Of a stretch of DNA of 64,000 nucleotides, positions 1,504-11,378 are shown piece by piece; within the stretch, counting starts at the first letter, position 1; the number at the start of each line of letters is the position of its first letter. Source of the stretch: Bugula neritina. Lineage: Eukaryota > Animalia > Bryozoa. The notes under the pieces were generated by a model that was not told the origin of the DNA, did no database searches, and was given only the letters and a program-made list of their open reading frames with translations. The position numbers were made by a program, and so were the translations under genes. The DNA lies in NCBI GenBank assembly GCA_964035545.1, contig OZ037772.1, forward strand, positions 4,654,233 through 4,718,232. The letters run 5' to 3'.

Positions 1504-1699
<196 letters not shown>

Positions 1700-2865: not shown

Positions 2866-3127
<262 letters not shown>

Positions 3128-3360
3128 ATTGAGATATTGAGATATTACGCTCTCATTTAATGCTCAGCAATGACATTAAATGATTGAGCACTTTCACCAT
3201 GGTCACAAACTCAAGCTGCTAGCATTTTGCAATGCTCGTGACTCCTAGGTGACCCCTAGAGTCACTCGAGCACTCTGGCTTGAGTTTACACACCTTTTAA
3301 ATATGCTTTAGTAAAACTATAAGTTTTACTATTGCGAAGGTGTGGGCCATGGTACTCTGT

Positions 3361-3407
3361 TCTGTGCTGATGAGGGGACAGATCCCGAAACAGCTGCTGT
3401 CCACAGA
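3361..3407 (+). ncRNA. Type I hammerhead ribozyme, copy 1 (predicted cleavage after C3401)
   Basis: TCTGTG (stem I) CTGATGA GGGGACAGATCCC (stem II) GAAA CAGCTGCTG (stem III) TC^ CACAGA (stem I'). All core nucleotides and the GUC triplet are present. Confidence 0.92.
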
Positions 3408-3631
3408 TTGAGATATTACGCTCTCATTTAATGCTCAGCAATGACATTAAATGATTGAGCACTCTCACCATGGTCACAAACTTAAGCTGCTAGCATTTTG
3501 CAATGCTCGTGACTCCTAGGTGACCCCTAGAGTCACTCGAGCACTCTGGCTTGAGTTTACACACCTTTTAAATATGCTTTAGTAAAACTATAAGTTTTAC
3601 TATTGCGAAGGTGTGGGCCATGGTACTCTGT

Positions 3632-3678
3632 TCTGTGCTGATGAGGGGACAGATCCCGAAACAGCTGCTGTCCACAGA
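3632..3678 (+). ncRNA. Type I hammerhead ribozyme, copy 2 (predicted cleavage after C3672)
   Basis: Identical to copy 1. Confidence 0.92.
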
Positions 3679-3902
3679 TTGAGATATTACGCTCTCATTT
3701 AATGCTCAGCAATGACATTAAATGATTGAGCACTCTCACCATGGTCACAAACTCCAGCTGCTAGCATTTTGCAATGCTCGTGACTCCTAGGTGACCCCTA
3801 GAGTCACTCGAGCACTCTGGCTTGAGTTTACACACCTTTCAAATATGCTTTAGTAAAACTATAAGTTTTACTATTGCGAAGGTGCGGCCCATGGTACTCT
3901 GT

Positions 3903-3949
3903 TCTGTGCTGATGAGGGGACAAATCCCGAAACAGCTGCTGTCCACAGA
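3903..3949 (+). ncRNA. Type I hammerhead ribozyme, copy 3 (predicted cleavage after C3943)
   Basis: Same core, with a single change in loop II (CAGA to CAAA). Confidence 0.92.
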
Positions 3950-3969
3950 TTGAGATATAAATATATATA

Positions 3970-4004
<35 letters not shown>

Positions 4005-4743
4005 CAGTACTATATAAGTAATGTGTGTGGCCTTTTTATGTACTCCAACTGATTGAACCTAACTTCTCAAATAAAATACAATTTACAAAACAACTTCATC
4101 TCACGCAGGTCATATATGCACAATATATCTAGTTGATTGCCTCATATAATCTTAATTAGCTTTCTGAGTGCACGGCAAGAAAAGCTGTTGTATAGACAGG
4201 GATATAATGTATATTATATATCATGAATAATTGAAATGAACTTGCTTAAAGTCATGTTGGAGTTACTTGCACCTGTGTGGTAATCCACTGAATAAGTTCG
4301 TCTACAGACAAGTTATTTACAACTTCTGGTCCAGCAGAGAAGGCTTTTAGCAACCAGACTTACATGTAACTTGAACGGAAGCTAATTAGGTGTAAGAACA
4401 GAATAAAACTTTTGCTAACGCAAATAAGCTGTATATTAGATAGTAGAATAGCAACACAACTTTGATATGGTAAAATATGTTGTATAAATTTCATTACTGA
4501 TAATTAACATATTATAATAATGCATATAAGCAGTGCAATTTCTGTTGAGTATATAATAATATACAGAAATATAATTACGATGTGAATGATATACACATTA
4601 TAATATACTTGACACTATCATGAGTGTGTGTATTGGTGAATTCTCTAGAATAAAATTATATACAGTCAGTGATCACAAATATTATCCATTTTATGTCCCA
4701 GTACCTCACTGAGCTGATTATTAGTAAACTGTAGCTGATAAAT

Positions 4744-11378
<6,635 letters not shown>

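Follow-up and report, generated by a model that had tools for sequence, protein, structure and literature searches.

The DNA analysed here, referred to as the window, is a stretch of 64 kb (C8:4654233-4718232) from an animal genome of 216 Mb. At positions 3136-3958 of this stretch, Tandem Repeats Finder reported a tandem repeat with a period of 271 nt, 3.0 copies, 98% matches and zero indels, which bears out the description of three near-identical 271-bp units given in an earlier note on this sequence. The array is set in (TA)n, also as described there: an upstream (TA)n microsatellite, presumed to be the insertion target, spans 2866-3129, and a downstream run spans 3955-4002 (both from Tandem Repeats Finder). 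Direct reading of the 5' junction revealed an additional copy of the 8-mer TGAGATAT at 3130-3137 (+ strand), equivalent to unit positions 8-15, which repeats the site where the arrays stop on their 3' side. The array itself, all of it on the + strand, begins with a 5'-truncated unit 0 (3136-3401), which a BLAST of the unit against the locus aligned to unit positions 6-271 and which runs up to the first predicted cut site. Two predicted excised monomers follow, namely monomer 1 at 3402-3672, defined by cut-site geometry, and monomer 2 at 3673-3943, which on comparison of the units carries four private substitutions; each measures 271 nt, exactly as had been claimed. The last 15 nt (3944-3958; unit positions 1-15) represent the constant 3' end of the insertions and lead into the (TA)n. 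Upstream of the array, another (TA)n run and AATTAC hexamer repeats were seen at window positions 1504-1699, 1712-1856 and 2745-2855.

Three hammerhead motifs were located in the array, at 3361-3407, 3632-3678 and 3903-3949, with predicted cuts at 3401/3402, 3672/3673 and 3943/3944, i.e., after C3401, C3672 and C3943 of a GUC triplet that is found in all three units. A 35-nt ribozyme core matched exactly at 3367-3401 and 3638-3672, and with one mismatch, in loop II, at 3909-3943, as compared with no match in 100 shuffles. Comparison of the units revealed that the loop II A behind this mismatch in hammerhead 3 is the usual family base, and that the G at 3381 and 3652 is private to the window array. 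Read directly from the window units, helix I is formed by UCUGUG/CACAGA (6 bp) and extends past a UGU/UU internal loop by eight further pairs; the core is CUGAUGA, with GAAA after helix II in all three units; helix II is GGGG/UCCC (4 bp, of which the last pair is G-U, with a 5-nt loop); and helix III is ACAG/CUGU (4 bp, with a CUG loop). The invariant positions of a hammerhead are all present (CUGANGA, GAA, the A15.1-U16.1 pair and a triplet ending in H, not G), and the topology is that of type I, in which helix I is open and loops cap helices II and III. All three motifs were also recovered by a descriptor that required CUGANGA, a helix II of at least 3 bp, GAAA, a helix III of at least 3 bp, UH, and a helix I of at least 5 bp; a scan of the 64-kb window returned these three sites only, each of them on the + strand, and the expectation from simulation was 0.005 per 64 kb. 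The full catalytic core, the 6-bp stem I and the GUC triplet that had been claimed are hence confirmed by direct reading and by the descriptor scan, and each window unit, judged from its primary sequence, carries a complete type I hammerhead motif. The same scan identified no minus-strand hammerhead in the window, which makes a symmetric viroid-like replication unlikely. By analogy, the extended helix I would correspond to the canonical type I layout with loop-loop contacts, unlike the minimal Penelope-type hammerhead (general background and PMC7229834).

Searches with Rfam models were negative. No Rfam hammerhead family was reported for the whole window at gathering; Hammerhead_1 (RF00163), the model that the earlier note had proposed for this purpose, gave no match at 3100-4000 or 3610-3700 with E up to 10, and did not report the 271-nt family when it was run on the whole genome. 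The RAGATH-1 hammerhead model produced a local match to the core and helices I and III (15.2 bits, E 1.5, threshold 56.3), aligned to 3632-3677 of hammerhead 2, and neither RF00163 nor the members of its clan attained their gathering score. Since all of the defining bases and helices can be read directly, this miss is put down to the limits of the model, which has 45 positions and derives from other sequences. The one RF00163 match of the genome lies at L031:1499-1549 (C5:11895045-11895091; 25.4 bits, cut-off 34) and is a different motif with an 8-bp helix I; the same locus holds, at 700-764, a decayed copy of the 271-nt-family ribozyme. A hammerhead of yet another sequence, with a CUGACGA core, a 7-bp helix II and no ORF of at least 150 aa within 10 kb, was observed at L035:5884-5928, which points to at least one other hammerhead-bearing family in this genome.

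As had been claimed, the unit lacks an ORF, the longest open stretch in the multimer being 38 aa on the + strand and 45 aa on the - strand. Its G+C content is 43.5%. Folding of the linear monomer gave -103.3 kcal/mol (z -7.7), and that of the circular monomer gave -97.4 kcal/mol with 72% of the bases paired. No LTRs flank the window array or the other arrays that were read, the flanks being occupied in most cases by (TA)n instead. The sequence-level features that are characteristic of metazoan non-LTR retrozymes were found, i.e., tandem units of 271 bp (expected range ~150-450 bp) with a type I hammerhead in each, absence of coding capacity, a G+C content below 50% and a strongly self-paired monomer.

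Part of the unit is contained in 20 public runs, one of which is on record as RNA. The four runs examined all consist of assembled contigs, from which RNA ends, strand and level are not readable. In the oligo-dT metatranscriptome X3, the unit is covered at low depth and one contig crosses a unit junction; DNA carry-over is a possible source. The contigs all show the usual family base at 3483, 3538 and 3652, indicating that these three window bases are private to the window array. In X17 and X1, the summed contig depth over window positions 3385-3690 reached up to ~1.1 million in a run of 620 million letters, a contig depth that is not interpretable as such and could reflect either very abundant RNA or collapsed copies.

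In the whole genome, the unit gave 72 scored matches of 97-100% identity on contigs C1-C9. Pattern counts revealed 483 copies of the 41-mer hammerhead (with at most two mismatches), 401 junctions of the terminal 15 nt into (TA)n, 228 copies of unit positions 16-44 and 65 seamless internal unit junctions; the reversed-pattern control was 0 in each case. The genome therefore holds ~400 dispersed insertions of a 271-nt family whose members are 97-100% alike, and the family accounts for about as many short repeats in (TA)n microsatellites that Rfam misses. The majority of insertions are one unit or less in length, and only 65 units are flanked by two ribozymes; the 65 internal and 401 terminal junctions are spread over all large contigs, and long arrays at a few loci, as in satellites of the newt type, were not seen.

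To describe the ends of the insertions, 21 arrays of one to four units were read base by base and the 5'-end statistics were completed with the whole-genome pattern counts. The 3' end was identical in all 21 arrays: 15 nt past the cut site, the sequence passes directly onto (TA)n. The 5' ends fell at 16 different unit positions, from 1 to 230, and the 5' flank was (TA)n in most of the 21 arrays. No target-site duplications were visible in arrays with non-(TA)n flanks. A constant 3' end, a ragged 5' end and a single type of target are together the signature of target-primed reverse transcription, not of satellite spread. On contig C3, an inverted, 5'-truncated retrozyme fragment (C3:3688142-3688260, - strand) stands head to head with a 1.1-unit array (C3:3688444-3688751, + strand), an arrangement that recalls the inverted partial copies described for Penelope-like insertions. 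Tandem 208-nt hammerheads at locus L033 were considered as a second family and rejected; they are a 5'-truncated fragment of the 271-nt family, starting from about unit position 217; the duplication (L033:929-1432, C8:1883429-1883932) also took in 50 nt of an unrelated repeat as well as a (TA)n run, and this copy provides no evidence for a shared 3' module. The unrelated repeat is ~270 bp long and occurs at L033:700-978, L034:3917-4185 and L035:3062-3330; a first look gave 164 candidates at 83-91% identity, and its best matches are concentrated on contig C8.

The junctions also hold information on the template. Every insertion contains the sequence that spans the cut site, so the template was either uncut there or cut and re-ligated. 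Among the 228 copies that reach unit position 16, 65 (29%) cross the junction and 163 (71%) end within ~25 nt of it. The largest class of 5' starts comprises 50 copies in which (TA)n is fused to the ATAT at unit positions 12-15 (31 of them exact); beside a (TA)n flank, such a start is indistinguishable from a start at position 16, which lies exactly one 271-nt turn from the 3' end. The main 5'-end peak thus coincides with the ATAT site of the 3' end. By whole-genome pattern count, no copy starts at unit position 1, i.e., at the cut site, after an A/T flank, and two copies start at unit position 4; in the sample of 21 arrays, 5' ends slightly past the junction, at unit positions 260-267, also occur. 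A linear monomer released by ribozyme cleavage would terminate at position 1, and ends of that kind are absent from the counts. A reverse transcriptase travelling around a circle, on the other hand, would meet its own primer after one turn and, unless it is strand-displacing, would stop there or a few bases further on, which matches the observed pattern. The junctions therefore favour a circular monomer, putatively copied by target-primed reverse transcription, as the template; it is possible that the ATAT peak arose instead from microhomology capture on a linear multimer.

Units diverged by a mean of 0.5% within an array, where many are identical, as compared with 1.5% between arrays. Several arrays have variants that are common to their own units and private within the sample of 21 out of ~400 insertions (190G and 149T in L018, 203A in L029, 37T in L010 and 137C in the window), and these fit repeated copying of one monomer. 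Three arrays are mosaic. L017 has 264G, 10T and 19A at all three of its internal junctions, with none of these at its terminal junction or 5' end; L025 has a deletion common to two units and absent from the first; and of the window units, 0 and 1 have 251G in common and are two bases apart, with six differences separating unit 2 from either. These mosaics fit later unequal exchange, and because of them the similarity of the units in an array does not cleanly prove rolling-circle copying. Multiple copying of a monomer and later unequal exchange probably both act.

The foremost competitor to a circular template retains the same retrozyme and has it move in a SINE-like manner from linear RNA, with an uncleaved multi-unit or read-through transcript being primed on a (UA)n tail; no circle would be involved, and tandems would originate from multi-unit masters and unequal exchange. 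A tailed linear template would likewise give a constant 3' end followed by (TA)n, the mosaics of L017, L025 and the window array show duplication of units at the DNA level, and the preponderance of copies of one unit or less is in keeping with it. However, an efficient hammerhead would remove the tail from its own template, zero insertions start at the 5' end that the ribozyme would make, and the top 5'-end peak is the 3'-end site, at a distance of exactly one turn. Moreover, arrays of exactly 2.0 (L018) and 4.0 (L017) units counted from the ATAT site cannot grow by homologous exchange from a 1.0-unit copy. We consider movement from linear RNA to be unlikely, though it is the one competitor of some weight.

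An enzyme that could copy such a template is encoded in the same genome. Locus L036 contains at 2889-5216 (- strand) a 775-aa ORF with an RVT_1 match, the C-terminal end of which displays a GIY-YIG motif that includes the Cys/His insert characteristic of Penelope nucleases. Of the 43 copies in which the codon after residue 775 is readable, only the L036 copy and two others have a stop there; the codon is open in the remaining 40, and in these the frame continues through the remainder of the nuclease domain wherever the continuation was read in frame. A language-model atlas placed the L036 protein with animal clusters that combine HTH_animal, RVT_1, DUF8422 and GIY-YIG. The Pfam GIY-YIG profile gave one hit only over the genome, and the nuclease of this Penelope-like element (PLE) was not detected by it. 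The family comprises at least 400 candidate pieces, including loci L037-L066, with 94-100% identity among the 30 best-matching and down to 77% in older pieces; a young family with both RT and GIY-YIG domains therefore co-exists with the retrozyme. The pieces are 5'-truncated at many points and have the 3' side in common, and at their 3' junctions TATA or ATAT of the element passes into (TA)n. Of the two main 3' sites, one ends in AGATAT, as does the retrozyme. A preference for (TA)n has been reported for Naiad PLEs, and an insertion bias towards microsatellites has been proposed for Neptune PLEs (PMC8557442); furthermore, PLEs have been proposed as the drivers of retrozymes (PMC7229834 and bioRxiv 10.64898/2026.07.22.740005).

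With respect to sequence, the unit and the one PLE family examined have no similarity by blastn with short words, and descent of the unit from the PLE was rejected, as only chance 9-13-mers are shared. The descriptor, even when relaxed, identified no hammerhead in the PLE. In the 3' UTR of the PLE, at L036:2495-2540 (- strand), CUGAAGA, a 6-bp hairpin and GAAA followed by UAUC resemble a Penelope-type hammerhead of minimal form whose helix III has one pair; this motif fails the descriptor. PLE pieces were present in the 1.5-kb flanks of 2 of the 21 arrays, never abutting them, and none was present in the 64-kb window. A genome-wide check of copy number and of linkage to Penelope, suggested in the earlier note, resulted in ~400 insertions, of which the 21 arrays read do not abut PLE ORFs. 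At L052, a retrozyme copy is arranged tail to tail with a PLE copy in one (TA)n tract (~695-942), and at L018/L047 (C4:14352538-14356069) the two occur within ~1 kb in the same (TA)n tract; such neighbours suggest common insertion hot spots. The proposal that a Penelope-like RT mobilises the family stood in part: circumstantial support comes from a young PLE family having the same (TA)n target and type of 3' junction, and its sequence has zero similarity to the unit. On the strength of these junctions, the co-resident young PLE family is the likely driver of the retrozyme.

The same observations bear on whether the units could be leftover PLE terminal repeats, i.e., an orphan pseudo-LTR and not an independent element. 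PLEs form partial tandems and carry hammerheads, and the young family occupies the same (TA)n sites, including the tail-to-tail pair at L052; nevertheless, the unsimilar sequences, the scarcity of PLE pieces near the arrays and the (TA)n on both flanks of most arrays make this origin very improbable. Less probable still is an ordinary minisatellite or satellite that spread at the DNA level with a fortuitous or dead hammerhead, for which the silence of the Rfam models and the unequal exchange within arrays could be cited, but which is at odds with ~400 dispersed short copies having one fixed and one ragged end, with the invariant core bases and three helices kept in 483 copies, and with the only hammerhead variant shared across several arrays, 253 T>C (five arrays), which converts the G-U pair of helix II to G-C.

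The assignment to metazoan non-LTR retrozymes with a type I hammerhead, made in the earlier note, is supported by the complete motif, the non-coding and self-paired unit, the ~400 young copies and the junctions of reverse-transcription type. We consider it probable that the window array represents a single insertion of a non-LTR retrozyme family, young and non-coding, that moved by way of a circle and target-primed copying, likely driven by a PLE. According to this scheme, the hammerheads in a + strand transcript of a multi-unit locus would cut after GUC and free 271-nt monomers, which a host RNA ligase would close into circles; self-cleavage and the 271-nt circle are predictions at this stage. 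The end of a nicked (TA)n target would anneal to the AUAU at unit positions 12-15 and prime reverse transcription. The enzyme, most likely that of the young PLE family resident in this genome, which follows the same (TA)n insertion rule, would copy one turn, with early fall-off about half of the time giving rise to 5' truncation. After 271 nt it would reach its own start, where ~70% of the copies would end within ~25 nt, and the remainder would go round again to produce tandem units. Subsequent unequal exchange would add or homogenise units.

A more specific claim can be formulated, that the ~400 insertions record the whole route of mobilisation: a re-ligated circle as template, priming by a (TA)n end on the AUAU that lies 12-15 nt beyond the ligation site, termination in most cases after one turn, and a PLE driver that obeys the same (TA)n-to-AUAU rule with no shared sequence. 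This we put forward tentatively and rate as slightly less likely than not. If it is true, target-primed copying of ribozyme-made circles would thereby be demonstrated from a genome for the first time, and recognition would be by microhomology rather than by a shared 3' module. Animal retrozymes are a known class, but the route by which they are copied into DNA and the enzyme responsible have not yet been demonstrated. The present family is young, small and restricted to a single target, such that its junctions are still readable and the route through cleavage, ligation and target-primed copying is directly testable in one organism.

As far as can be judged at the sequence level, the 271-nt element belongs to the known class of metazoan non-LTR retrozymes. 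The members described by Cervera and de la Pena (2020; PMC7229834) likewise consist of units a few hundred bp long, arranged in tandem and each carrying a type I hammerhead, and have no ORF or LTR and a G+C content below 50%; no PBS or PPT is present in them, and they resemble the present family in their self-paired monomer, their many dispersed copies and the co-residence of PLEs. Arrays of up to 62 units occur in the coral of that study, whereas at most four were seen here and most insertions are one unit or less. Expression and circles were demonstrated there, and target-primed copying of circles was proposed as a model (PMC7229834); the 271-nt family is known here from genomic sequence. 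The ribozyme core string had no match in the printed sequence of the papers.

PLEs and their pseudo-LTRs (Craig et al., 2021, PMC8557442; Li, Clavereau and Pollet, 2026, bioRxiv 10.64898/2026.07.22.740005) are alike in their microsatellite bias, 5' truncation, partial tandems and occasional inverted neighbours, and their terminal regions carry hammerheads, as does the 271-nt unit. In Xenopus, homology between a retrozyme and a pLTR has been described (bioRxiv 10.64898/2026.07.22.740005), whereas none was found here against the one PLE family examined. The 271-nt unit differs from PLEs in that it encodes nothing, is unlike the resident PLE in sequence and has a canonical long-helix hammerhead, as compared with at most a minimal-type one in the 3' region of the PLE. 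The hammerhead repeats of Schistosoma also combine a type I hammerhead with short tandem repeats and self-cutting RNA; those repeats are SINE-like, whereas the 271-nt arrays are tiny and dispersed. Newt satellite 2 (as cited in PMC7229834) is similar in having a type I hammerhead within short tandem repeats that give self-cutting RNA, but its arrays are long, and its hammerheads, in which helix III is very short, work as dimers, in contrast to the 4-bp helix III and the tiny dispersed arrays of the present family. Plant LTR retrozymes (PMC4918200) are non-autonomous retroelements whose RNA is cut by hammerheads and circularised, as is predicted here; their hammerheads are of type III and lie in LTRs, they have a PBS, a PPT and TSDs of 4 bp, and Gypsy elements mobilise them; this family shows none of these features. 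SINEs that follow the tail rule of a LINE partner are comparable in being non-coding and 5'-truncated, with a fixed 3' end and the target and tail of a resident autonomous element. Unlike in SINEs, the 3' sequence shared with the PLE is only the hexamer AGATAT, the template crosses the ribozyme site, and copies can exceed the length of the unit. What the family adds to the known class is a strict targeting of (TA)n, a fixed junction 15 nt past the ribozyme site and a stop after one turn, an insertion signature that goes beyond what is described in the available parts of PMC7229834 and bioRxiv 10.64898/2026.07.22.740005.
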